A stretch of 64,000 nt of DNA from Macrostomum lignano (lineage: Eukaryota), in the NCBI GenBank assembly GCA_002269645.1, contig NIVC01000634.1:43698-107697 (forward strand), read 5' to 3'. Shown here piece after piece: positions 9,952 to 63,898 of the stretch (the stretch's first letter is position 1; every line of letters begins with the position of its first letter). The notes under the pieces were generated by a model, which was given only the letters and a program-made list of their open reading frames with translations, did no database searches and had not been told where the DNA came from. The position numbers and the translations under genes were made by a program.

Positions 9952-12601
9952 ATGATTGCCGACGACTCCGAGCGGGCGCTGACCTCCGGCCTGCTCAGCG
10001 CGCTGGGAACCGAGGCGCGCCAGATCCCGCTGCGCCCGACCACGGCCGGCCTCACCCGTCGGGCCCGCCTGGCCAAGCCGACGGCGCCTCTGCCGCTTGA
10101 GGAAGACGGCGGCTCCGGCGGGGACGGCGGCCTGCAGCTGCCGCTGATCGACGACGCTCGCCGACAGAAGCGTCGGAAGCGGCCACCAGCTGGCGGCTCC
10201 AGTCCGGACCGGCTGGAAGCACTCGGCCCCCGGCGCCTCGGCCGAACAAGGCGAGTCGGCGACTCGACCTGCCACGGCCGCCGCATCCTGGCGTCGACGC
10301 CGCTCGGAGACGTCGCCGAAGCCGATGGCTGCCGATGTTGCCGATTGCGTCAACACGCGCTACGCGGTGCTGAACGGCCGCACCCGGACGGAGGCCAGCG
10401 ATTTCGAGGCCTTCAGGCGGCGCTACGGCCGCGGCAGCGAATGGGGTCGCGTGGCGTGGGCGGCCCGCTGCATGGAGCAGTTCCTCACCGCCTACTCCGT
10501 GCCGATCGCCTTCGTCAACGGCGAGAAGCTGGCGGCCCTGGCTGAGCAGCTCGACTTGTCCGGCCGGCGGCCGACCGGAGCTCAGCTTCTCGACTGTCTC
10601 ATCAACCGGTCGGACGTGGCGCGGCTGGTGTCGCAGCCCGGCCGGCGGTTCTCCGGCCCGGACGGCCGGTTCCGAGCCTGCGCGCTCATCCAGGCCCGCT
10701 GGCGCGGCTTCGCGCAGCGCCGCCGCTACCTGGAGCTGCGGCGCCGGCGCCAGGCGGCCGTTGTCATCGCCACGGCCTGGCTGCTGCAACTGCGCCGGAG
10801 GGTCGCCCGGGTGCGTCTCAGCGAAGCCCGGTCGCAGCACCTAGACGGCTACAGGCGCAGGCTGCGGCTGCTCGCCAAGAACTGGGCGGACTGGCAGCGC
10901 CAGCGCCGCGTCCTGGTGCACATCCCGTCGGCTGGGCTCTCGGAGCGGACGCGGAGTCGTCTCGGCGATGACGGCATCGACCAGCTGCAGGCCGGGCAGA
11001 TGGCGCGGTTGTGCGACATCCGCGACCCAAATGTTGACGTCGTGCTGGTCTGCCCGCGGCCGGTGAGCCCGGAGGTGGCGCAGTACTTCAGCCGGCTGGC
11101 GGGCCTTCAGCCTGCCATCCGGTCGGGCCGCGCCGAGGACCAGGCGGACGCCAGCAGGAGGTTTCGCCTGGTGGTGCCGGAGGCGGTCGGTCAGTTCCGC
11201 GGGCTGCCGCTGTGCCTGTCCACCCTGCTCAACTACTCGCCGAAGGCGCTCCGCCAGATTCGCGAGGTGGTGGTGGGCCGGCGGGCCTTCATCGTGCCCG
11301 GGCTGGCCTGCGCCGACGACCTCGCCGTGGCCGACCAGCTGGACCTGCCGATCCTCTGCCCGGAGCCCGGCGCCCTACGGCTGTACAGCGGCAGCGCGGG
11401 AGTCGGAGAAATTCTTCGAGCTGCCGGGCTGCCGATGCCGCCGGGCGAAGCCGGGCTGGCGGCGTCGGTCGAATGTCTGGCTGACAGGCTGGCGGCGCTG
11501 GTCACCTCCAACCTGGACGTCGGCCGGTGGCAGGTGACGCTGGAGGATTCGGTCGACGAAGCGGAGGACGCGGATCGAAGCCGGCGGGTGTTCGACACGG
11601 AGCGACTTCGCTGTCGCCAGTGGGCGCTGGAGGAGCGGCAGCGGCTTGGAGAGGCGTGGTCAACGTCTTGGAGTCAGGAGGGCGTCAAGCTGAAGGTGCT
11701 GGAGGAGCTTCACCAGTCCGACTCGGCAGGGCTGAGCGGCCAGTGCGGCCGGGAGTTCCTGGCCGAGTTCGCCGCTCGCGGAGGCTGCATTCGAGCGTGC
11801 GCGGACGGCAGGGCGGCTCGGGTCAGCGCCGACCTCTGCGTTGAGCCGAGCGGAGCTGTGCGGCTCGTCAGCTGCGCGGACGGCGGCGGCAGCGGCGGTC
11901 CGAGGTTCGTACCCCAGTCAGCGCTGCCACCGAGCCGCCTCTCCGAGCTCTGTGGCCGGCTCGGCTCGGCCTGCTTCGAACGACGACTCATCGGGCACGT
12001 CAGCGTCGAATTCGACGTGTTCCAGGAGGGCGGCAGCTCCGCGCCTGCCGTGCTGACAGCCGGGCTGCGGTTCGGCTACTCGGACACGGCCGCGATGGCG
12101 CAGCTGCTGCAGTTCGCCACCAACTCCAGCCTCGACCCGGTTGGCCACGAGCTCACGATGAGGCGGCGGCTTCCCGGCGGCGGCGGCGGAGGCAGCAGCA
12201 GCGGAGTTCGGCACCGACCGCGCACCGCCGCTGCTGCAGTCGGCTCCACCGGCAGTGGTCGTCAGCGTCGATTTGCCGCTCTGTCGGCCGGCCTGCGGCA
12301 CTCCGGCCTGGCCGCCGTGGACTTCGGCGTCTTCTTCCAGCTGTGCAAAGCCCGTGGCGTCGGGTTCGACGTCGCGGACCTCACCGGCACCGTCTTCTGC
12401 CTGGCCGAATCGGCTCGGCGCGACCGCCTGTGCGTCCTGACGGTGTCGAACGGGTCGCATCGGGCGCGGGCGGAGTTCGCGCGGGTGCTGGCCGCCATCA
12501 ACGAGGAGCTGGGCGCGGCGGAGTTGTCGAACTTCGCGGACTACCTGCCGCCGGAGGGCGAGAGAGTCGAGCGGCTGAAGGCGCGGGGCTCGGAGGCCTG
12601 A
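9952..12601 (+). CDS. IQCH: IQ motif-containing protein H (IQCH)-like; main ORF 10325..12601, probable N-terminus from ATG 9952 in another frame
   Basis: IQ motif LIQARWRGFAQRRRY followed by AAVVIATAWL, RVLVHIPS, RLCDIRDPNVDVV, LNYSPKAL and DDLAVADQLDLPILCPEP, all collinear with IQCH as recalled. The 5' part (9952-~10200) is in a different frame, so the start is uncertain. Confidence 0.85.
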
Positions 12602-13237: not shown

Positions 13238-14242
13238 ATCTGACACCTACATTGTAGCATCTGACACCTACATTGTAGCATCTGACACCTACATTGTAGC
13301 ATCTGACACCTACATTGTAGCATCTGACACCCACATTGTAGCATCTGACACCCATATTGTAGCATCTGACACCTACATTGTAGCATCTGACACCTACATT
13401 GTAGCATCTGACACCCACATTGTAGCATCTGACACCTACATTGTAGCATCTGACACCCACATTGTAGCATCTGACACCCACATTGTAGCATCTGACACCC
13501 ACATTGTAGCATCTGACACACACATTGTAGCATCTGACACCCATATTGTAGCATCTGACACCCACATTGTAGCATCTGACACCCACATTGTAGCATCTGA
13601 CACACACATTGTAGCATCTGACACCCACATTGTAGCATCTGACACCCACATTGTAGCATCTGACACACACATTGTAGCATCTGACACACACATTGTAGCA
13701 TCTGACACCCACATTGTAGCATCTGACACCCATATTGTAGCATCTGACACCCACATTGTAGCATCTGACACCCACATTGTAGCATCTGACACACATTGTA
13801 GCATCTGACACCCACATTGTAGCATCTGACACCCCCATTGTAGCATCTGACACACACATTGTAGCATCTGACACCCATATTGTAGCATCTGACACCCACA
13901 TTGTAGCATCTGACACCCATATTGTAGCATCTGACACCCACATTGTAGCATCTGACACACACATTGTAGCATCTGACACCCACATTGTAGCATCTGACAC
14001 CCACATTGTAGCATCTGACACCCACATTGTAGCATCTGACACCCACATTGTAGATTCTGACACCCACATTGTAGCATCTGACACCCACATTGTAGATTCT
14101 GACACCCACATTGTAGCATCTGACACCCACATTGTAGGGTCTGACACCCACATTGTAGATTCTGACACCCACATTGTAGCGTCTGACACCCACATTGTAG
14201 ATTCTGACACCCACATTGTAGCGTCTGACACCCACATTGTAC
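13238..14242. repeat. Minisatellite, 21-bp unit (TCTGACACCCACATTGTAGCA)
   Basis: About 47 visible copies between the convergent IQCH-like and beta-subunit genes; explains the SDTHIVA, VRCYNVG and CQMLQCG ORFs. Confidence 0.97.
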
Positions 14243-17150: not shown

Positions 17151-20100
17151 ATGTTCCGCTCAGCCAAGAGGACCCTCGCAACCGGCGCTGGCCGATCCGG
17201 CTCCTACCTGCGCGACATTCTCGCGCGACCTTCGGGCGGCGTCGAGGCCCCCAGCGACGACGGAGCCAATGACGCCCTCCAGCCGATGCTGCAGGCGTAC
17301 GATGAGAAGAACTTCACTGAGTTGGGACGCCTCCTAGGTGAGGGCGCGAACCCGCACTTGCCTCTCCGGGACAACCGGACGCTGGTGCAGCTGGCCGCCT
17401 TCGACGGCAACCTGCAGGCGCTGCGACTGTTCAAGGAGCAGGGCGTCGATTTGAACCGACGCGGACCGGACGGCAAAGTGCCGCTGCATCACGCGCTCAG
17501 TGCCAGGCGGCTGCTGACTGTCAAGAGGATGTGCCAGCTCGGCGCCAGTCCTGATGTGCCCTACTCGTCTGGCGCCTACCCGGTACACCGGTACAGCGGC
17601 CAGGCCAGCGTGGAGGTCATCCGATGCCTGCTCAGTAAGTTGTTGAGAAGACTACTTAAGGCTTTGAACCCCAACTAGTTCTTGATCGGGGAAGAAATTG
17701 CCTACATTTAGGCTCGTAAATCACATTATAAGAACAATCAGAATAATTGGCAGAAAATTTTAGGCCTTTAAAGCTCTGGCTGAATTAAAATCACTGTCAG
17801 AGATCACGGATGCAGAGTCACCATCATCAGCATAGGAAACGCTGCTGTGTGCGCTGCGTCCTTCTCCCACATTGGCAGCCTCTAAAACTGCCTACCTGCC
17901 AAAGGGTGCATCTACGAGCGTATTAATCTTGCGAATAGGACAGCAACATGTGCTGCAGCGGTGCGTTGATGAAAACTGCAATCCAGATGCCGCTGCACTC
18001 GCAACATTGAAGGAACAGTTGGCCCAGGTTTTTCAAATACAGATCTATAGTGGCTGCTGCTAAGAGAAACAGGGGTCTGCAGCAAGCAGATAAGGTCACA
18101 AAGAGGGAGGAGCCTTGAACGTCATTCCTAACCCTAACATTTCTGTAGCAGCAAGCCAGGGCTGAAAAGCTTGGTGGCAGCCGTTGAAGCCGCGAATGCT
18201 TTCATATAATGGGCAACCGAAATCGATTGGTCATATTTCAGCATGCAACGAAGCTCGAGTGTTGCCTTACTAGTGTAGAACAAATACTACTTCCAAGTCG
18301 CCAGTAGTAGCAAGAAATGCGTTTTGCAGTGAAATTTTGGCAGGTTCCTCTATTCTCTTGAAACTCATGCGCTCATTGAACTTTTTAAGTCTTCCAGGCT
18401 AAAGTATTGAATTCCAGCCAATGGCTTGGAAGCTGGTTTGGCTGGTTCCCATACGAATCCCATCATCTACTGCTTCCAGGGGACTGTAAAGCCAGACTGG
18501 ACGTGTACGACAGGCTCAACAACACTCCGCTGCACCGCGCCTGCCTCGAGGACTCGTTTCACCACGTGCTGGAGCTGATTGACTATTGCAGTGAGCAGAT
18601 TCTCAACCACCGCGGCTACGAGGGCAAGACCGCCTTGCACGTGGCTGTGCTTAACCAAAACCGGCGAATCATTCGCCTGCTGCTCACCCGCGGCTCCTTC
18701 GTCGACGTGCCCGCCAGCAACGGCAAGACGGCCATCGACCTGATAATGGGCGCTAATAATGTTGTGCTCATGAGCGACTTGGCTCATTTCTACACCGACC
18801 AGATGTCGGCGGCGGTGACCGCCACAAGCTTCAAGGAGTTGCTTGACGCGCCGCAATTCCTGCAGTACCTGGGCTTTCTGGACGCTGTGGACAACGAGTT
18901 CCAGGTGTGCAGCGTGCCGTACATTGACCTAGGCGAGGAGGAAGAGAAGCAGTTACTGAAGAAGGTAGTGAAGGATGAAAACATGGATCTCATCGAGTTT
19001 AAGGAGATTTTGATGAAGCTACTCCAGACCGAGGTGTTCCATGTGCTCTGCGACGAACAGAACGACTCCTTGCTGCGGAGAATGGCGGCCAACGTAGTCA
19101 GATACGTGCTGTTTCGTGAAGATGCAGTCATGTTAAAGAAGCTGGTTGCCTGCGGCCTTGTATGGAACCGTATCGAGGTCCTAATTGAGAACAAGCTCGA
19201 AGCGCTGTACCTGCATACCCCAGACCGCGGATTCGCTGGAATGCTGACTCACTTCTATCGGCACTTTGCCAGTGAACACAAAGTTCAGTGGGGACATCTG
19301 GCTAGGCACTACGGCCAGCGTTGCAGCGCCTTCGGAATGCAGGCCGACCGAGGCGGCCTGAACCAGGACGTTGCCTTCCTCCGCCACCCGATGCACACGC
19401 TGGTAATTTGGAGCATCCTGGCCGGCCGCAGCAAGCTCACGGAAATTCTACTACAGCGCGAGAGATTCGACGTTTTGCCGATGTCGCTATTTTGCGCGGC
19501 ACTGCTCCGCACCTTCAAGGACAACCCGAGCGTCAACGTGGACCCCGACAGCCTGGAAGAAAAGGCGCTGGCTTGTGAGAAGTTTGCCGTGAATATTGCA
19601 GAGACCGTGTTTGAGGTGGACACCTCCTATGATAAGTGCGTGACCACCGACTTCCTGCTGTACCCGCTACCCACCTACGGAAACGTTTCCTGTATGGACC
19701 TCGCCGCGAAGAACAGCTCTGCCCTGTTTCTGCAGAGCCCTCCATGCCAGATCGCTCTAGAGAAGAAATGGTACGGCACTCTGTATGATGCGAACGCCAT
19801 CATCCGCGAGATAATTATTTGGTTGGGCGTTATTCCCCTGAACCCAATCATACCGTGGTACCTGATGCGTCAGGAGCGAATCCTGAAGATTATGGACGAG
19901 CGGCACCGCAGCCCCACCAAAAAGAGCAGCTGCGATTCGGCTGAAAGTCAGGACTGCAGCTTCCTGCTGACCGACAGCCCCTCCGCGAAGGATGCCATTG
20001 TGGCAGAGACTGACCCAGACGAGTCGGTCGACGCCGACGGGGAAAATAGCAAAGGCGCCAATGAATCCGCCTCTAAAGAGGACAAGAAGAAGCAGGATAG

Positions 20101-22700
20101 TAGCGGCGAGCAGCAGCACCCAGCAGACGGTGTCAAAAAATCGCCTTCCACCGCGGGGGCCGGAGCGGTGGCGCGCCAGGAATGCTTCTTGTACCGATGG
20201 GCGCTGCATCTGTACGACTTTTACCATATCCCCGCAGTGAAGTTCCGCTACCACGCTACGTCGCACGTAATTATGGTGCTGCTCATGTCATACATCCTGC
20301 TCTACAACTGGGAGTACTCGATCGACATGATTGAGTGCATTATGTACTCCATCGTATTTGGCTACCTGATTGAGGAGATCGGAGAGTTCGTCAGCATCGT
20401 CCGGGAAGAAAACGTGAGAAACTTCTTCGCCAGCAAATGGAACATTATCGACATCGGCGCTGTGCTGTGCGCCATGATCAGCTTCAGCATCCGGCTCACT
20501 CGCCTCGACTACGTCATGGACACGAAGGAAGAGCACTTTTGGATGGACTTTGACGATACCGTCTGGTACATCGCGCGTGTCTTTTTAAGTAAGTTTATGG
20601 ATGACTTAGCTGGAGTTTCGACACCTATTCGTTGAGCTGAGCGCAGAACCTGGTTAAAGCAACGGGTTGATAGAAATAGGCGTGTACGGATCTGCCCAAA
20701 TCAGATGGACCCCTTATTTCAATCCGAATGCAAATGATAGGTCTAGGATGCGGTGATATATGGCGTAGGATCCAGGTTGTTAAAATCCAGGATGTCAGTC
20801 GTAAGATCCATGACGACAGGAGTAGAATCCAGGATTTCAAGAGTCAAATCCAGTATGTCAGGCATAAGATCCTAAGATCATAAGATAGGAGCTAAGTATG
20901 AAATGATAGAACAGGAATACGAGCTAAATCGGAATTCTGATGGCTACTCGTAGGTTAATCAGTCAGCACGTTTCAATTACAGGCGTCTCCTGCCTTCTCT
21001 ACTGGGTCCGGCTGCTGTACATCTCCACGGTGATGGAAACCCTCGGCCCAAAGCTGAAGATGATCGCCCGCATGACCAGCAAAGACATGATCCCGTTCCT
21101 ATTCATTCTTTTCATCTTCATATTCGGCTTCGGCGTTCTCATCCACGCGCTGTTGTTCCCGAACGGGTTCAAGGCCTACAACCCGGAGCAGATGAGCTCG
21201 ATTGATGTGGTGCTGGCCATGTTCAAAATCTGCTTCTACAGCATGGTCGGGGACTACAGCCTGGATACAATCATGGGTGACGACAGCTGCGATGCGATCT
21301 ACGAGAACAAGACGTTTAACTCGAACGGCTGCCCTCACAACACCGGCAGGTCAGAGCCGGATTAACATTCTACCGAATTATTACTGTGTTCGAATGAGTA
21401 GTTCTTTGGCATTCATTGGTGATTCAGTGCCCCAAGAGTTCATCAACCGGTTGGTGATCGGCATGCCAAACAGGGGCATATGGCGCCTTTTTACAGAATA
21501 GCTTTCGCACCCCTGGAGCCTGGAACTGGCTCTACTTCAAGAAATATCCTTGATACGCTCCTAATGCCACGACTAGTGATGACACAAGCATTCTCGTCAT
21601 TCTTTCACACGTTACTGAAGAAAGGCAGACACATGCAGAGTTGGCATAAGCTTGATACTCAGCAAAGGAAAGCTAAAATCAATGCCATCAATACCTGGGT
21701 TCATTCAGCCAGCGAGCCAAGCTATGAATTGAGGGGGGGCGTAGCCTGTGGTCCAGCGCGGCGCTCTTGTATGCCAGCGGCCCAGGCTCAATTTCAAGTG
21801 CAGTCACATTAATTCGGGGCTAAATTTGAATCTCCAGCAAAATTTGCGAGTCCTTCTGCTTCAACTGTCCATGCTTGATCTTCAATGAAAACCTTTCCCA
21901 GATATCTGGTGCCTTACTTCGTCCTGCCTCTCTACGTGATCGTTACGGAGATCCTCCTGCTCAACTTGATCATCGCGCTGTTCAGCAAGACGGTCGACGA
22001 GATTGACTCCAATTCCAAGGCCCTGTGGCAGTTCGAACGCAACGACCTCATCGAGGAGTTCCGCGGTCGGACCTCGCTGCCCCCTCCGTTGAACGTCATC
22101 CCGCTGGCCACCCGACTGCTGCTGCACGTCGTCAGGCGGCTCTGCCCGACAGCTCTGCTGCGCTTCCAGAGGGCTGCCCAGTTCAACCAGAAGCTGATCC
22201 TGCAGTTCCTGCTGTTTCAGGTTTGCCTTTGTCGGATCGACGGCTCCCTGAGCTCACTTTCTGAACTCACTCTACTCCCTTAACTCACTGCCCTGAACTC
22301 ACTCCTTAAAATCACTCTTGAAATCAGTCTCTGAAACTACTGGCCAGAACTAATCCCTTGAACTCCCTGAACTCTCCGACAGGCGGTGAGTCTGCGCAAC
22401 CAGCGCCAGCACATGATGGAGCAGTGCTGTGGCCTCGCCGACGACCAGAGTGAGCAGCTCTGCCAGCGCATCCAGGATATCGTCGAGACCGAGCTACTGA
22501 AGTCGAAGAAGTCCAATGAGCATCAGCCGTCCTCCTCGGCTAAGCCGTCATCGACGAAGCCGAGGACGGACGCGGAGGCGGGCGAGAAGGAGGGCACCAT
22601 CGACGCCATCTCGGCGTCAATCATGAACGCTGAGCCGCAGAAAAAGCGGCGCGATTCGCAGCTGTCCGCGGTGTCCCAGGAGCCCGAGCAGAAGGATTAG
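17151..22700 (+). CDS. TRPM/TRPS-like cation channel with an N-terminal ankyrin-repeat domain, ~1198 aa, 5 exons
   Basis: Exons 17151-17634, 18480-20588, 20983-21349, 21902-22220 and 22383-22700 are all GT-AG and phase-matched (3597 nt). About 6 ankyrin repeats (KVPLHHA, NTPLHRAC, KTALHVAV). MHR4-like segments LVIWSILAGR and YGNVSCMDLAA...LEKKWYG. Also FYHIPAVKF, KWNIID, LGPKLKMIARM, ILLLNLIIALF, TRP box WQFER and LPPPLNVI. Confidence 0.9.
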
Positions 22701-23195: not shown

Positions 23196-25093
23196 TTACA
23201 TGCTTTGATAAATTGCATCGCAAAAATGGCATGTTACAAGTTCCGTAGTTACTGCTGCTTCTGTTTTTTTAAATAAAAGGTTGGTTATTGGATTATAGGT
23301 AATTTCTAGTTCTTGGGCAGCTGAGACCCATTGAATACCTATTGGACCCATTGACCCATTGGAGTACCTATTACCCACTCAATAGCTGGGGAGAACTCCA
23401 TGACTCACTGAATAGCTGAGGAGCACTCCATGACCCACTGAATAGCTGAGGAGCACTCCATGACGCACTGAATAGCTGAGGAGCACTCCATGACGCACTG
23501 AATAGCTGAGGAGCACTCCATGACCCACTGAATAGCTGAGGAGCACTCCATGACCCACTGAATAGCTGAGGAGCACTCCATGACGCACTGAATAGCTGAG
23601 GAGCACTCCATGACCCACTGAATAGCTGAGGAGCACTCCATGACGCACTGAATAGCTGAGGAGCACTCCATGACCCACTGAATAGCTGAGGAGTACTCCA
23701 TGACGCACTGAATAGCTGAGGAGCACTCCATGACCCACTGAATAGCTGAGGAGCACTCCATGACGCACTGAATAGCTGAGGAGCACTCCATGACGCACTG
23801 AATAGCTGGGGAGCACTCCATGACGCACTGAATAGCTGGGGAGCACTCCATGACGCACTGAATAGCTGGGGAGCACTCCATGACCTAGCTGGGGAGCACT
23901 CCATGACCCACTGAATAACTGGGGAGCACTCCAAGACCCACTGAATAGCTGAGGAGCACTCCATGACCTAGCTGGGGAGCACTCTATGACCCACTGAATA
24001 AGCTGGGGAGCACTCCAAGACCAACTGAATAGCTGAGGAGCACTCCATGACCTAGCTGGGGAGCACTCCATGACCCACTGAATATGCTGGGGAGCACTCC
24101 AAGACCCACTGAATAGCTGAGGAGCAGCACCCCACGACCCACTGGATTCCTAAGGAGCCGTGACCTGCATAAGGAAGAGTCAATGCAGCGCACTGGCGGT
24201 TATTCCAGTTCAACTCATCGAAAACCCAGCAGCTGCTCGGCCAATGGCTGCTCACCGGCCTCTGCCGCCTCCTTCTGCTCCTGGATCGCTTGATAGTCCG
24301 CCGGCCTGTCCGTGTAGAAGGCCACCTCGTTGATGCCGATGCACTTGTACCAGCTGTCGCTCCTCCACTTGATCACCTGCCGGTTGTGCAGCCCACTATT
24401 CTTCCTCTGGAACGACTGAACAGAAGGCAGAAACATTGGGGATCTGAGTGAGTTTTGAGTTACTTGTAAGGGATATAGATTGAAACCAAAACTGACAAAA
24501 GCACAGGATGGGAAAACTTATTAGCTTAGATGTGACTGACACAAAAACAGATAGGACTGACACAAACAGATTGGACTGACACAAACACAGATCGGACTGA
24601 CACAAACACAGATCGAACTGACACAAACACTAATGTTACTGGGAGCCAGCCGCAACCTCACCTTGATGCACTCGCTAATGAACAAGGAGCAATTATTCCT
24701 GAAATTGTAGGTATCTAACTCGCCACCAAACTCCAGCATCTCGTCGGCCAGGCTCTTCATCACTAACAGCTTAGCAACGGAGGTTCTCTTGGTGCTGGTC
24801 GGCAGAGAGCTCGGGTAGCTCCCGTTGTCGATGGGGTAGATGCCAAAAAGGATCCTGAAGCTGCCGTTCAGGGCGAACCTGTGGGTGAAGTTGTGCGCCA
24901 GGTAGTGGAACTGGCTCACCCCGCTCTTCAGGGCGGGCTCGCCCAGCTGCACGAACAGCACCACCTTGTACAGCGTCCGGCTGATCTCGTGACCTTGAAT
25001 GAACTGGTCGAAGTTCTTGCTGTTCAGCATCACCACCGAGGACCAGATTTTGAACGTCAGCTCGCTTGGGGCTACTCGCGACTCCAACTGCAT
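23196..25093 (-). CDS. Hypothetical protein, possibly a redox-inactive thioredoxin fold (ERp29/PDI-like), ~238 aa, 2-3 exons
   Basis: Exon 25093-24662 (AAG|GTGAGG) joins exon 24415-24256 (TTCAG|) in phase 0. A phase-1 donor GCCG|GTGAG at 24256 matches an acceptor at 23321, giving a third exon 23320-23196; without it the ORF ends at 24215. VVMLNSKNFDQFI..YKVVLF resembles a PDI/thioredoxin domain start; no CxxC. Confidence 0.45.
23385..24125. repeat. Minisatellite, 30-bp unit (CTCCATGACCCACTGAATAGCTGAGGAGCA)
   Basis: About 24 visible copies inside the putative last intron of the thioredoxin-like gene. Confidence 0.95.
24535..24630. repeat. Short ~21-bp tandem repeat (TGACACAAACACAGATCGGAC) in an intron
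   Basis: 4-5 degenerate copies. Confidence 0.7.
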
Positions 25094-37474: not shown

Positions 37475-39110
37475 CTCTACTCTCTCAGTCTACTCTCTCA
37501 ATATCTACTCTCTCAATAAATCTCTACTCTCTCAATAAATCTCTACTCTCTCAATCTCTATTCTCTCAACATCTACTCTCTCAATATCTACTCTCTCAAT
37601 AAATCTCTACTCTCTCAATCTCTATTCTCTCAATCTCTACTCTCTCAATATCTACTCTCTCAATAAATCTCTACTCTCTCAATCTCTATTCTCTCAATCT
37701 CTACTCTCTCAATATCTACTCTCTCAATCTCTACTCTCTTAATCTTTACTCTCAATACATCTCTATTCTCTCAATAAATCTCTACTCTCTCAATCTCTAC
37801 TCTCTCAATCTCTACTCTCTCAATCTCTACTCTCTCAATCTCTACTCTCTCAATCTCTACTCTCTCAATATCTACTCTCTCAATCTCTACTCTCTCAATC
37901 TCTACTCTCTCAATCTCTACTCTCTCAATATCTACTCTCTCAATCTCTACTCTCTCAATCTCTACTCTCTCAATCTCTACTCTCTCAATCTCTACTCTCT
38001 CAATCTCTACTCTCTCAATCTCTACTCTCTCAATCTCTATTCTCTCAATCTCTACTCTCTCAATATCTACTCTCTCAATATCTACTCTCTCAATCTCTAC
38101 TCTCTCAATCTCTACTCTCTCAATATCTACTCTCTCAATAAATCTCTACTCTCTCAATCTCTATTCTCTCAATATCTACTCTCTCAATATCTACTCTCTC
38201 AATATCTACTCTCTCAATAAATCTCTACTCTCTCAATCTCTACTCTCTCAATATCTACTCTCTTAATATCTACTCTCTCAATCTCTACTCTCTTAATCTT
38301 TACTCTCAATACATCTCTATTCTCTCAATAAATCTCTACTCTCTCAATCTCTACTCTCTCAATCTCTACTCTCTCAATCTCTACTCTCTCAATCTCTACT
38401 CTCTCAATCTCTACTCTCTCAATCTCTACTCTCTCAATATCTACTCTCTCAATCTCTACTCTCTCAATCTCTACTCTCTCAATCTCTACTCTCTCAATAT
38501 CTACTCTCTCAATCTCTACTCTCTCAATCTCCACTCTCTCAATCTCTACTCTCTCAATATCTACTCTCTCAATATCTACTCTCTCAATAAATCTCTACTC
38601 TCTCAATCTCTACTCTCTCAATATCTACTCTCTTAATCTCTACTCTCTTAATCTTTACTCTCAATACATCTCTATTCTCTCAATAAATCTCTACTCTCTC
38701 AATCTCTACTCTCTCAATCTCTACTCTCTTAATCTTTACTCTCAATACATCTCTATTCTCTCAATAAATCTCTACTCTCTCAATCTCTACTCTCTCAATC
38801 TCTACTCTCTCAATCTCTACTCTCTCAATCTCTACTCTCTCAATCTCTACTCTCTCAATATCTACTCTCTCAATCTCTACTCTCTCAATCTCTATTCTCT
38901 CAATCTCTACTCTCTCAATATCTACTCTCTCAATATCTACTCTCTCAATAAATCTCTACTCTCTCAATCTCTACTCTCTCAATCTCTACTCTCTCAATCT
39001 CTACTCTCTTAATCTTTACCCTCAATACATCTCTATTCTCTCAATAAATCTCTACTCTCTCAATCCCCACTCTCTCAGTCTACTCTCTCAGTCTGCTTCT
39101 CTCAGTCTTT
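37475..39110. repeat. Minisatellite, 15-bp unit (CTCTACTCTCTCAAT), intergenic
   Basis: About 1.6 kb of visible tandem copies with recurring variant blocks. Confidence 0.96.
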
Positions 39111-39819
39111 GCTCTCTATCTCAACTCTGTGAGGCCAGATGCTTGTCATGACATGCACAGAGTAAAAAGCTCGCACAGAAGCGAGCTCGCATCCCCAGCT
39201 GCAGGCGCAGTCGAAATCTGTGGAACAAAGCTGCATGCTCAGAGCAGCTGTTGACATGCAAACAGCGTCACTCTCAGGCCCGCATCCGGCGACAAAAGCT
39301 GCTCAGAAAAGCGGCTCAAAGCAGAGCAGCAAAGCGAATGCAAAACAGCAATGGAAATTTTGCCTGCAAGATGCATTGATGTGCCGGCAGTTTGGTGTAT
39401 TCGGATAATTGCCTCCCATTCTGAGTATGCAGAACAAAGAGCGCGTGCTCAGTCAGGCGAGGCATCCCTTTGTCACGCATTTTTCGAGTCGATTGCAGCT
39501 GAAGCATATTGCTCACTGAACACAGCCGGATTTTACCTTGCCGTCTGGCTCTGCAGCCGCTCTAATTTTAGCCATTTTGCTGACGAGTTTTAAAAAATCC
39601 GAGCTTTACATTCAGCTTGCATTTTCACTGCATGTTGCTGCTGATTTTTTAGCCTAACATTTTATTTTAATTTCAAAGTCATCTGTTCCGATCTGAAAAC
39701 TGTTGATTAAAATTATTTGTTATTTTAAGTAGAATCAGATTTGTGCGAGTCTGCTTTTTGAGTTATAATTAGAGTCATGATTCGGTAAGTCATGACTCAG
39801 ATAGGGTCATAATTTAAAG

Positions 39820-41340: not shown

Positions 41341-43209
41341 TCAGCTGAGTGGCACCGCACTGACCCCGGGTTCGCCAGGCTGGCAGAAGTACACGGTGTA
41401 TTCCTCGGCGTTGAAGGCGCAGCCGGCCTCGTTGTCGCAGTAGAGGCGGCGCCGGGCCAGCCAGGGGTGCCGGGCGGCGCTCAGCTCGGCAGTGCGCAGC
41501 TCCGGCTCCGCCCCGGTGTCGTGCGGCTTCGCCGTGGCGAAGTGCGCAAACAGCGGCGGAGGGAGCGACGCCTCCGTTGGCGACGGTGGCGCAGTCAGGA
41601 GGTCCAGCGTGCGCAGCAGGGCGAAGCTCGGCGGCTGGTTGGCGAACACGGACACGCGGCCGAGCTGGCAGTCGGTGATGTACACGCAGCGCAGGCTGGT
41701 GCTCACCGCGCTGATTCGCGCGAGTCCCAGATGCTTGATGCAGCTGTTCAGCCTCTGCAGCTGCTGCTGCTGCTGCGGGTACAGCGGGCAGTTGAACACC
41801 TCGACAGTCGCCGTGCCGCCGTTAATGACAAACAGGCGCTCGTTGAGGTCGTCGTGGTGCAGTCCGCGCGGCAGGTTCAGGCCCGTCAGCTGCAGCCGGC
41901 AGGCGCCGCACAGGTCCGCCGCCAGCACACGGTTGTTCGGCCCGTCAGCCAAGAACAGCAGCTGAGCGCGCCGGCTAAAGTGCAGCGCCTCGAAGCGGCT
42001 GGCCGGCGCCCCGGCCGCGGCCGGGCAGGCGTCGAAGGACAGGCGCATACCTGTGAGCAGCTGGCCGGCAGTGGACAGCACCAGCAGCTGCGAGCCGCCG
42101 CTCTCGGCCGGCGCCACTCCGTATAGCACCACGTCCGGCAGCGTCGACCAGCCAAACCAGCCGCGCTGCCGCTTCACGCCGAACTTCGGCTTGTAGAAAA
42201 GCGCCTGCGAGGGCCGCACGATGGCCAGGTCCGCCAGCTTCGCGCCGCCGGTGTCCAGACGCCTCGCCGCGGCGCCCTGAGTCTGCTGCGGCTGCGGCTG
42301 CGTGCCTGACTGCTCATCCTGCGGCTTCGGTTGCGGAGATTCGTCAGCCGTCGAGCCGAGCAGCTCGGAGTGAAGCTCGGCCAGCAGGTTGAGCAGGCAG
42401 GGAAACACCCGGCAGGCGCTGCTCCGCTGCTGGCGCCGAAACTCGCTCAGAATCGCCGAGACATCGGCGCTGCGTCCGGCCAGCCGGCCCTTCACCGCCA
42501 GCTGAAACTCTTCGCCGAACGCGCCGCCGCGGCAAGGAGCCGACTGGCTGCTCGGCGGGACGGAGTCGGACCCCAGGATGGACAGCAGCTCCTCCCAGTT
42601 TCTGACAAGCTCCGGGCGGGTGTCGCTGCACCGAACCTCCTCGGTGGCATCCTCGCCCGCGGCGGAGCTCAGCGTCTTCAGCTGTTCCTCCAGCTGCGCT
42701 GTCCGCCGCCTGAGCTCGGCCGCCTCCTCGTGAAGCCGCAGCCGGTGACGCTCGAAGATGGCATCCGCTTCGGCGAAGATGGCGTCAAAAATGGCCAGCA
42801 GCTCCTCGTGGAGGCGGCGGTGCGCCAGCTGGTTCCGTTCGAGGGCCGCGGCGTCAGCCTCCACCAGCTGCGCCCTGCCGCGGAGCGTCTCGACCCGCTG
42901 GCCGGCCAGCTCGAGCTCCGCGCTCCATGCTGAGCTGCGCACTGAAAACTCGGCGACGTCGTCGAGTCGGCGACCGCTGATGCCGCTGCGCGGCGGCGCG
43001 GAGACTTTCGCCAACTTGTGCGCCTGCGGAGGCGTTGAAGACTGCGGCTGCTGCGGCTGCTGCGGCTTCGAGGGCTGGCGCTTTCGGTAGCGGTGCTTGG
43101 CGCCCTCGCTGCGGCCTCCGCGGCTTTCGGGCAGCCAGCCCTCGTCGACGCTGAACTCCTGGACGAAGCTTCCTACAGGGCCGTGCACCGGGTCAAGGAC
43201 GGAGAGCAT
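41341..43209 (-). CDS. Hypothetical protein with a coiled coil and a C-terminal NHL/YWTD-like beta-propeller, ~622 aa, intronless
   Basis: 1.9-kb stop-free, GC-rich, non-repetitive ORF; first ATG at 43209. Heptad-rich segment (LAGQRVETL...LEEQLKTL) and blade-like motifs LLFLADGPNNRV, LNLPRGLHHD..RLFVINGG..TVEVF and VYITDCQLGRVSVF. Confidence 0.7.
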   Translation of the reverse strand: MLSVLDPVHGPVGSFVQEFSVDEGWLPESRGGRSEGAKHRYRKRQPSKPQQPQQPQSSTPPQAHKLAKVSAPPRSGISGRRLDDVAEFSVRSSAWSAELELAGQRVETLRGRAQLVEADAAALERNQLAHRRLHEELLAIFDAIFAEADAIFERHRLRLHEEAAELRRRTAQLEEQLKTLSSAAGEDATEEVRCSDTRPELVRNWEELLSILGSDSVPPSSQSAPCRGGAFGEEFQLAVKGRLAGRSADVSAILSEFRRQQRSSACRVFPCLLNLLAELHSELLGSTADESPQPKPQDEQSGTQPQPQQTQGAAARRLDTGGAKLADLAIVRPSQALFYKPKFGVKRQRGWFGWSTLPDVVLYGVAPAESGGSQLLVLSTAGQLLTGMRLSFDACPAAAGAPASRFEALHFSRRAQLLFLADGPNNRVLAADLCGACRLQLTGLNLPRGLHHDDLNERLFVINGGTATVEVFNCPLYPQQQQQLQRLNSCIKHLGLARISAVSTSLRCVYITDCQLGRVSVFANQPPSFALLRTLDLLTAPPSPTEASLPPPLFAHFATAKPHDTGAEPELRTAELSAARHPWLARRRLYCDNEAGCAFNAEEYTVYFCQPGEPGVSAVPLS

Positions 43210-43281
43210 GATGCTGTGCTGCTTGTCTGTCTTGTGAGTTTCCAACTTTGGCTTGGAGCCGCTGCCAGGGTCTTGTGCACT

Positions 43282-44204: not shown

Positions 44205-45600
44205 GTCACCCTGGCTGAGTCCGCTCTCTGATGGCTGGTGTGCGATGCCACAGACAGTGACTGAGTCTGCTCTCTGATGGCTGGTGTGCGATGCCACAGA
44301 CCGTGACTGAGTCTGCTCTCTGATGGCTGGTGTGCGATGCCACAGACCGTGACTGAGTCTGCTCTCTGATGGCTGGTGTGCGATGCCACAGACAGTGACT
44401 GAGTCTGCTCTCTGATGGCTGGTGTGCGATGCCACAGACAGTGACTGAGTCTGCTCTCTGATGGCTGGTGTGCGATGCCACAGACCGTGACTGAGTCTGC
44501 TCTCTGATGGCTGGTGTGCGATGCCACAGACCGTGACTGAGTCTGCTCTCTGATGGCTGGTGTGCGATGCCACAGACAGTGACTGAGTCTGCTCTCTGAT
44601 GGCTGGTGTGCGATGCCACAGACAGTGACTGAGTCTGCTCTCTGATGGCTGGTGTGCGATGCCACAGACCGTGACTGAGTCTGCTCTCTGATGGCTGGTG
44701 TGCGATGCCACAGACAGTGACTGAGTCTGCTCTCTGATGGCTGGTGTGCGATGCCACAGACAGTGACTGAGTCTGCTCTCTGATGGCTGGTGTGCGATGC
44801 CACAGACCGTGACTGAGTCTGCTCTCTGATGGCTGGTGTGCGATGCCACAGACCGTGACTGAGTCTGCTCTCTGATGGCTGGTGTGCGATGCCACAGACA
44901 GTGACTGAGTCTGCTCTCTGATGGCTGGTGTGCGATGCCACAGACCGTGACTGAGTCTGCTCTCTGATGGCTGGTGTGCGATGCCACAGACCGTGACTGA
45001 GTCTGCTCTCTGATGGCTGGTGTGCGATGCCACAGACCGTGACTGAGTCTGCTCTCTGATGGCTGGTGTGCGATGCCACAGACCGTGACTGAGTCCGCTC
45101 TCTGATGGCTGGTGTGCGATGCCACAGACCGTGACTGAGTCTGCTCTCTGATGGCTGGTGTGCGATGCCACAGACAGTGACTGAGTCTGCTCTCTGATGG
45201 CTGGTGTGCGATGCCACAGACAGTGACTGAGTCTGCTCTCTGATGGCTGGTGTGCGATGCCACAGACAGTGACTGAGTCTGCTCTCTGATGGCTGGTGTG
45301 CGATGCCACAGACCGTGACTGAGTCTGCTCTCTGATGGCTGGTGTGCGATGCCACAGACAGTGACTGAGTCTGCTCTCTGATGGCTGGTGTGCGATGCCA
45401 CAGACCGTGACTGAGTCTGCTCTCTGATGGCTGGTGTGCGATGCCACAGACCGTGACTGAGTCTGCTCTCTGATGGCTGGTGTGCGATGCCACAGACAGT
45501 GACTGAGTCTGCTCTCTGATGGCTGGTGTGCGATGCCACAGACAGTGACTGAGTCTGCTCTCTGATGGCTGGTGTGCGATGCCACAGACCGTGACTGAGT
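44205..45600. repeat. Minisatellite, 46-bp unit (GTGACTGAGTCTGCTCTCTGATGGCTGGTGTGCGATGCCACAGACA/C)
   Basis: About 30 highly homogeneous copies ending ~95 nt before the polycystin ATG; explains the three 470-484 aa antisense ORFs. Confidence 0.97.

Positions 45601-45693: not shown

Positions 45694-63898
<18,205 letters not shown>

Follow-up and report, generated by a model that had tools for sequence, protein, structure and literature searches.

Published surveys describe the TRPM and TRPS families as lacking ankyrin repeats (Himmel 2020, PMC7306681) and report MHR1/2, MHR3 and MHR4 in all of their members (Morini 2026, PMC13143021). A locus in the free-living flatworm Macrostomum lignano raises the question of whether a melastatin-type channel can instead be built on an ankyrin-repeat N terminus. 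The locus occupies positions 17151–22700 of a 64,000-nucleotide (nt) stretch of contig NIVC01000634.1 (the window), and a first reading of the bare sequence (the original prediction) proposed that it encodes a chimeric channel, in which an ankyrin module has replaced the usual N-terminal regions of a TRPM/TRPS protein. Is this gene real, to which channel family does its core belong, and is the combination of domains new?

Here we confirm that 17151–22700 is a real, intact, five-exon M. lignano gene with one open reading frame (ORF), an observation far above chance expectation. Its product is, very probably, a TRPM-like cation channel of a flatworm-specific clade that carries ankyrin repeats, lacks SLOG and is of the TRPM_MCLZ type, a family described so far from parasitic flatworms. 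The channel is a previously unstudied member of this published family and not a new kind of channel. Throughout, nucleotide numbers are window positions on the + strand and residue numbers refer to the spliced 1198-amino-acid (aa) window protein.

Gene model and domain organization

The five spliced exons form 3597 nt in frame, encoding 1198 aa and a stop codon with no internal stops, and all exon borders carry canonical GT..AG dinucleotides (Table 1). The five phase-matched exons and the ORF of about 1198 aa in the original prediction are thus confirmed. A public M. lignano protein model in UniRef (P0001) is identical to exons 2–5 (100% identity over 1036 residues), including its three junctions. 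P0001 is missing exon 1 and opens in the middle of an ankyrin repeat, at DCKARL, with no methionine, and is therefore a truncated annotation that can gain exon 1, or about 162 N-terminal aa. The repeats had been predicted to run unbroken across intron 1, and the expected VEVIRCLLR/DCKARL (slash, exon junction) is present there. Moreover, exon 2 alone encodes ankyrin repeats (aa 163–265), the MHR-like region and S1–S4 in one open frame, so the join between the ankyrin repeats and the channel is independent of splicing.

Comparison with the paralog P0002 points independently to the same junction between exons 1 and 2. In a BLASTP comparison, exon 1 matched P0002 with an E value of 6e-27 and the alignment stopped exactly at ...CLL of P0002. 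The P0002 locus in the genome (L001) contains an 84-nt intron at the same codon position as intron 1 of the window gene (...SCLLR/ICKADV). Introns 2 and 3 also have equivalents in the P0002 gene. Intron 4 is absent there; its junction in the window gene equals that of the P0001 model and fits the continuous paralog sequence FLLYQAFSLRNNR.

The N-terminal part of the protein is a canonical ankyrin stack. Pfam models Ank_2 (E 2e-20), Ank (4e-13), Ank_3, Ank_4 and Ank_5 all scored above their cut-offs at about aa 60–250, and xxPLH-type repeat starts at aa 109, 142, 176, 211 and 244, together with an N-terminal capping unit, give about six repeats. We also generated an AlphaFold2 (AF2) model from a 43-sequence alignment; it covers aa 163–1198 (P0001), with exon 1 outside the model. 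Its mean predicted local distance difference test score (pLDDT) is 80.7 and its predicted template-modelling score 0.78, with disorder limited to the loop at aa 644–725, which is not conserved among paralogs, and the C-terminal tail. The exon-2 part of the ankyrin stack is modelled as helix pairs with pLDDT >90.

Downstream of the repeats, the Pfam TRPM2-like domain PF25508 matched aa 416–578 (19241–19729) with 38.6 bits against a cut-off of 27, although over profile positions 98–254 only, and Ion_trans matched aa 768–1025. An hhalign comparison of the N-terminal halves of the family with those of 27 SLOG-bearing TRPMs gave a probability of 99.4% (E 6e-22), with confident columns at aa ~455–640 (MHR4) and weaker ones over the MHR3-equivalent part. 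We also weighed, and discarded, the idea that the ankyrin region is homologous to SLOG, as the hhalign confidence is essentially zero where the two are forced together. The Pfam scan of the window protein had no match to SLOG, Nudix or kinase models and found no domain of any kind in the exon 5 region, in agreement with the predicted absence of NUDT9-H and kinase domains. The SLOG model PF18139 (LSDAT_euk) was readily found in the control TRPMs P0136 (269 bits) and P0134 (93 bits), whereas it was undetected in all five ankyrin-clade proteins scanned, and local phmmer searches with two SLOG queries were likewise negative.

The channel core is of the TRPM type. In a phmmer search against the sequences of solved structures, aa 465–1068 aligned with Nematostella TRPM2 (6co7) at 120 bits. 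NOMPC ranked first for the whole protein, but through its ankyrin repeats alone. When only the transmembrane (TM) region was used as the query, all of the 60 best distinct PDB sequences were TRPM1–8 or TRPM2-like (103–67 bits), and each of the 50 best Foldseek matches of the AF2 model in the PDB was a TRPM, aligned over ~850–1030 of the 1036 residues. These searches, together with PF25508 and hhalign, corroborate the MHR4-like region and TRPM-style core of the original prediction; the contrary outcome that it had named, a TM region grouping with TRPC, TRPA, TRPV or TRPN, was not borne out. TRPN/NOMPC, TRPA, TRPC and TRPV resemble the window protein in having an N-terminal ankyrin stack followed by a six-TM TRP channel. 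They differ in the core, and the window protein has an MHR4-like domain between the repeats and S1. A core from any of these four families was rejected, because none of them is among the top PDB or Foldseek core matches and the NOMPC TM domain reaches 40.5 bits as compared with 67–103.

All of the motifs on which the original prediction had relied are present where it placed them: EEIGE (aa 793–797), WNIID (aa 815–819), the filter MVGDY (aa 951–955; 21240–21254), two pore-loop cysteines, and WQFER with LPPP (aa 1029–1049). The cysteines, C967 and C981, are near-invariant over 43 TRPM and TRPM-like sequences. Landmarks of the S1–S4 domain are H753, H757, Y790, E794, E797, N816, D819, R874 and Y877. 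The AF2 model places a C-terminal helix at P0001 residues 950–977, corresponding to about aa 1112–1139.

Canonical TRPMs (Nematostella TRPM2-like, vertebrate TRPM1–8 and flatworm TRPM_PZQ-type channels) are accordingly the best sequence and fold matches over MHR4, S1–S6 and the TRP helix. They share with the window protein the pore-loop disulfide cysteines, the acidic or amide Ca2+-site residues in S2 and S3, a WxFxR TRP box followed by PPP, and the C-terminal helix. By contrast, the window protein is without the defining MHR1/2 (SLOG) and the Cys-rich N terminus, has canonical ankyrin repeats, possesses neither NUDT9-H nor an alpha-kinase, and carries Glu in place of Gln at the second Ca2+-site residue. 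Taken together, the alignments and the structural model indicate that the ankyrin module fills the position that the Cys-rich and SLOG (MHR1/2) regions hold in TRPMs, and that the MHR4 and the channel are melastatin-type.

A flatworm family and its rivals

To place the protein among its relatives, we used an exhaustive profile search of 1.84 billion representatives and analysed the best 150 of 2485 matches, scanning all 150 locally for ankyrin, SLOG and NUDT9-H and checking seven with Pfam. Word-indexed searches with the non-ankyrin part or with a 10-sequence family alignment reach the three nearest M. lignano proteins only, and with the full-length query they are dominated by unrelated ankyrin proteins. 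Among the best 150 matches, the proteins that carry ankyrin repeats and lack SLOG are, beside the window protein, P0002, P0003, P0121, P0122, P0124, P0125, P0127/P0277, P0135, P0129, P0130, P0133, P0126/P0275/P0276, P0144 and P0163. Nearly all other matches long enough to include an N-terminal region carry SLOG, with or without NUDT9-H. The ankyrin-bearing, SLOG-less proteins that have a species name all come from flatworms (M. lignano, Opisthorchis, Schistocephalus and Dicrocoelium); P0128, P0129, P0144 and P0163 bear no species name.

A neighbour-joining (NJ) tree was built from the S1–TRP region (129 sequences, 290 columns, 200 bootstraps; Smp_333650, the schistosome channel discussed below, is not among the sequences, nor is any sequence identifiable as TRPS). 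In this tree, the ankyrin-type proteins and four N-terminally truncated fragments form one 20-tip clade that contains no SLOG proteins (bootstrap 48), made up of an M. lignano subclade (99) and its sister, a parasite (neodermatan) subclade (86). The tree places the window protein with P0002, P0003 and P0123 (98), and it is ~45% identical to its nearest paralogs. M. lignano has at least 9 paralog lineages of ankyrin-bearing TRPM-like channels, which are less than 50% identical to one another. Thus, although the ankyrin module does sit in the MHR1/2 position, as had been proposed, a one-off 'chimeric' event does not hold up: the arrangement is common to these M. lignano lineages and to trematode and cestode proteins.

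Two sets of sequences lie at the margins of this group. P0139, P0316 and P0142 (M. lignano, 480–691 aa) are fragmentary models without an N terminus that represent one further paralog, with the hallmarks KFQYHLLSH in S1, RQFDIIP and LPPPLNIL; P0139/P0316 and P0142 join the ankyrin clade in 40% of bootstrap replicates. In P0146 (M. lignano, 1781 aa) and P0152 (Clonorchis, 1708 aa), significant ankyrin-consensus matches lie upstream of SLOG, at aa 99–211 and aa 93–181, respectively, and both proteins have SLOG and NUDT9-H. These matches suggest that some canonical flatworm TRPMs, too, may have gained ankyrin repeats.

The architecture of the window protein has a published counterpart. Sm.TRPM_MCLZ (Smp_333650) is the target of meclonazepam in schistosomes and has been expressed at full length as a functional protein (Park et al. 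2023/24, PMC10788528). It is a protein of 1380 aa encoded by three exons, with ankyrin-like modules instead of an NH2-terminal MHR1/2 or SLOG domain, and is the sole Schistosoma mansoni TRPM paralog without SLOG (Sprague et al. 2024, PMC11731825). A TRPM_MCLZ channel has since been reported in all parasitic flatworms, with a duplicated channel exon in Opisthorchis (alternative exons 3a/3b), and the label 'TRPM-like' was proposed because of the ankyrin repeats (Rohr et al. 2026, PMC12861061). The novelty that the original prediction had left to be checked is therefore lost, the same architecture having been described in close homologs in these three studies. Free-living members of the clade are unmentioned in the three papers.

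Several of our matches can be linked to this channel. The published spacing H827/H831/Y864/E868/R943/x946 (4, 33, 4, 75 and 3 residues) recurs unchanged in P0130, P0133 and P0126, whose S4 position is occupied by F (cestode), Y (trematode) or H. This suggests that these parasite proteins are TRPM_MCLZ orthologs. P0126 (Opisthorchis viverrini, 1906 aa) contains two complete tandem channel domains, at aa ~690–1000 and ~1370–1680, whose S4 residues are N814 and H1493, respectively. The pair matches the alternative exons 3a and 3b (Rohr et al. 2026), which the gene predictor has here joined end to end.

The window protein has the domain order of TRPM_MCLZ: ankyrin repeats without SLOG/MHR1-2, an MHR4-like region, S1–S6, the TRP helix and a short helical C terminus without NUDT9-H. 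Its gene likewise has few exons, and it falls in one NJ clade (bootstrap 48) with the proteins that bear the TRPM_MCLZ landmarks. The S1 H..H, S2 Y...E and S4 R pocket is kept: five of the six published meclonazepam-contact residues in the pocket of the schistosome channel (H827, H831, Y864, E868, R943 and Y1117) are conserved, as H753, H757, Y790, E794 and R874, whereas Y1117 in the TRP helix is replaced by N1034; the variable S4 residue H946 corresponds to Y877. Beyond the substitution in the TRP helix and the Tyr at the S4 sensitivity site, the window protein differs in being only 21–24% identical to the parasite proteins, in its length (1198 versus 1380 aa; the parasite proteins have a long insert within the ankyrin region), in an S3–S4 spacing that is 5 residues longer, in its five exons rather than three, and in its origin from a free-living species, outside the coverage of the TRPM_MCLZ papers. 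Because the M. lignano proteins form a radiation of their own (bootstrap 99), with the parasite clade as its sister group, the window gene is a co-ortholog or paralog of TRPM_MCLZ and not its 1:1 ortholog.

Other readings of the locus have to be weighed against membership of the TRPM_MCLZ-type clade. The ankyrin-bearing proteins could instead be an ancient lineage, that is, a sister group of TRPM (and TRPS) that branched off deeply, at family level, retained the ancestral ankyrin repeats of group-1 TRP channels and never acquired SLOG or NUDT9-H. In keeping with this idea, when a distant ankyrin/Ion_trans protein serves as the root of the NJ tree, the clade, together with P0139/P0142, falls outside all 106 SLOG-type TRPMs; the canonical repeats run directly into the MHR3-like region, for which degenerate ankyrin repeats have been reported (Burroughs 2015, as cited in PMC13143021); and the surveys that arrived at an 'ankyrin-free TRPS-TRPM ancestor' had sampled no flatworms. 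However, the species-named members among the best 150 matches are all flatworm proteins, so that an ancient origin would require loss in every other phylum; this restriction argues for a derived state. The deep nodes have bootstraps of 31–48, all flatworm TRPMs, ankyrin- and SLOG-type, come together in 21% of replicates, and attraction of a long branch to the root is likely. The next-best profile scores after the family belong to flatworm NUDT9-H TRPMs, and the MHR4-like region is clearly homologous to its counterpart in SLOG-bearing TRPMs. We therefore regard an ancient origin as improbable; if true, it would contradict both the 'ankyrin-free, SLOG- and Nudix-linked TRPM-TRPS ancestor' and a universal MHR1-4, and would make the M. 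lignano radiation (at least 9 lineages versus one in Schistosoma mansoni) the main surviving diversity. Assignment to TRPS, which the original prediction had suggested and which is so far unreported from flatworms, is very unlikely. Like TRPS (soromelastatin; Caenorhabditis elegans CED-11 type), the window protein has a protostome melastatin-related core outside the main TRPM groups, the ankyrin clade branches outside the bulk of the TRPMs in the NJ tree, and TRPS is mostly protostome but missing from the sampled non-mollusc lophotrochozoans (PMC7306681). Yet TRPS is defined by SLOG/MHR1-4 and NUDT9-H and is explicitly ankyrin-free (PMC7306681, PMC13143021), and the window protein is the opposite on all three counts.

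Two further readings would deny the locus a working channel of this architecture. If the ankyrin exon or exons came from a separate upstream gene and the channel started later, the fusion would exist only in the prediction, and the public model P0001 does indeed start at exon 2. We give this almost no credence: that start is the mid-repeat truncation without a methionine described above, exon 2 by itself joins ankyrin repeats, MHR-like region and S1–S4 in an uninterrupted 2109-nt frame, and the homology of exon 1 to P0002 extends precisely to the junction, with the intron position conserved. In addition, 13 homologs share the collinear architecture, including the cestode protein P0282 (UniRef/MetaClust only; presumed transcript-derived), and Sm.TRPM_MCLZ works as an expressed full-length protein (PMC10788528). 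Alternatively, in a genome that is rich in repeats and partly polyploid, the gene could be one of many recent duplicates, now decaying and without a working channel as its product, a view to which the heavy duplication of the family in this species, the dense satellite arrays around the gene and the replacement of the TRP-helix Tyr by Asn1034 lend some colour. The intact frame of 1198 codons and the canonical splice sites speak against decay, as does the retention of all near-invariant family residues (among them both pore cysteines, the residues of the Ca2+ site, and W and R in the TRP box), and an identity of only ~45% to the nearest paralogs implies long independent maintenance. Decay is thus highly improbable.

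Some points do weigh against a TRPM_MCLZ-type channel with the structure given here. The gene and its protein are predicted, being known from genomic sequence and paralogs, and the 5′ end could reach further, as P0002 and P0003 carry 120–175 extra N-terminal residues. The union of the M. lignano and parasite clades has a bootstrap of only 48% in an NJ tree of 290 columns that contains no sequence identifiable as TRPS. The tie to Smp_333650 rests on landmark spacing, length and published descriptions. Finally, conductance, Ca2+ dependence, drug insensitivity and the role of the ankyrin repeats are all predictions from homology.

The flatworm ankyrin-bearing clade is an unacknowledged exception to current generalizations about TRPM and TRPS domain architecture. 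Flatworms were outside the sampling of both general accounts (PMC7306681, PMC13143021), which are incomplete for this reason. What is new here is that a free-living flatworm has an expanded set of ankyrin-bearing TRPM-like genes. The family would predate the parasitic flatworms, provided that its M. lignano and parasite clades are truly linked, a union with weak support (bootstrap 48).

Predicted gating and drug response

By homology, the channel would be a tetramer, assembled through the S5–S6 pore domain and the C-terminal helix, that conducts cations non-selectively and is probably permeable to Ca2+. In the filter MVGDY, Asp954 is aligned to the Glu of MYGEL, the filter of Nematostella TRPM2, which suggests divalent permeability. 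Like other TRPMs, the channel would be expected to gate through the TRP helix and the S1–S4 pocket. In the alignment to Nematostella TRPM2, the window protein has E794, E797, N816, D819 and E1039 in the columns that we take to be the Ca2+ site of TRPM2/4/5/8, where the position of E797 is Gln. The alignment agrees with the proposal that the S2–S3 Ca2+ site and an acidic filter residue have been retained and, because these positions are occupied, intracellular Ca2+ is a plausible co-agonist. With neither SLOG/MHR1-2 nor NUDT9-H, gating by ADP-ribose or nucleotides is not expected. The stack of about six ankyrin repeats at the N-terminal position presumably provides an inter-subunit or partner-binding surface instead. 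The different gating partners envisaged in the original prediction are a hypothesis.

The S4 site that determines drug sensitivity is occupied by Tyr877, the low-sensitivity state. Given this residue and Asn1034, the channel is unlikely to respond to meclonazepam, and its predicted sensitivity is low. Channels of the TRPM_MCLZ type are validated anthelmintic drug targets, and their native activators and the role of the ankyrin repeats that they have in place of the nucleotide-binding SLOG domain are of interest. Transgenesis is available in M. lignano, which would make the species an accessible system for studying the gating of these channels and the partners of the ankyrin stack.

Feature coordinates and surroundings

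Table 1 Exons, introns and protein regions of the ankyrin-bearing channel gene (window positions)
Feature	Position	Strand	Description	Basis
Exon 1	17151..17634	+	aa 1-161 plus 1 nt; start ATG 17151; N-terminus, ankyrin repeats 1 to 4a	ORF, GT donor
Intron 1	17635..18479	+	845 nt, GT..AG; interrupts ankyrin repeat 4	
Exon 2	18480..20588	+	aa 162-864, 2109 nt; ankyrin repeats 4b-6 and cap, MHR3/4-like, disordered loop, pre-S1, S1-S4	
Intron 2	20589..20982	+	394 nt; after S4, ...ARVFLS/VSCLLYW	
Exon 3	20983..21349	+	aa 865-986; S4 end, S4-S5 linker, S5, pore helix, filter MVGDY, C967, C981	
Intron 3	21350..21901	+	552 nt; ...NTGR/YLVP	
Exon 4	21902..22220	+	aa 987-1093; S6, TRP helix WQFERNDLIEEF with LPPP (22017-22091), post-TRP helices	alignment, AF2 helices
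Intron 4	22221..22382	+	162 nt; junction FLLFQ/AVSLRNQR	
Exon 5	22383..22700	+	aa 1094-1198; long C-terminal helix ~aa 1112-1139, disordered tail, stop TAG 22698-22700	
Ankyrin-repeat domain	17280..18790	+	aa 44-265, ~6 repeats, split by intron 1	Pfam
MHR3/MHR4-like cytoplasmic helical region	18893..19924	+	~aa 300-643	PF25508, phmmer, hhalign
Low-complexity acidic/Ser-rich loop before pre-S1	19925..20170	+	aa 644-725	AF2 pLDDT <50 over P0001 482-563
Pre-S1 and S1-S4 voltage-sensor-like domain	20207..21029	+	aa 738-880, across intron 2	alignment to Nematostella TRPM2 and family

The window (1–64000) is packed with minisatellite and microsatellite arrays (53 TRF rows), for example at 13238–14241, 23373–24126, 37475–39128, 44208–45600 and 46739–47715. 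An array of a 30-mer x26 begins ~670 nt past the stop codon of the channel gene, and other arrays in the window include a 15-mer x107, a 46-mer x30 and (CAGA)x244. Such repeats, read in frame, account for many of the window's long 'ORFs'. Short internal direct repeats are also found within the channel gene itself, as '..atccagga/tgtcag..' units in intron 2 (20700–20900) and 'aactcac(t)c' units in intron 4 (22240–22380), and they resemble, on a smaller scale, the satellites with which the window is otherwise filled.

Three further ORFs were noted in the window. Upstream of the channel gene, 10325–12601 (+) encodes 758 aa with an IQCH-like ATP-grasp domain (PF24923, E 3e-41). On the opposite strand, the 634-aa ORF at 41341–43245 (−) has no Pfam match and is not obviously a tandem-repeat artefact. 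The 796-aa ORF at 48049–50439 (+) contains a PKD domain (PF00801, E 7e-19) and could belong to a larger polycystin/REJ-type or adhesion gene.

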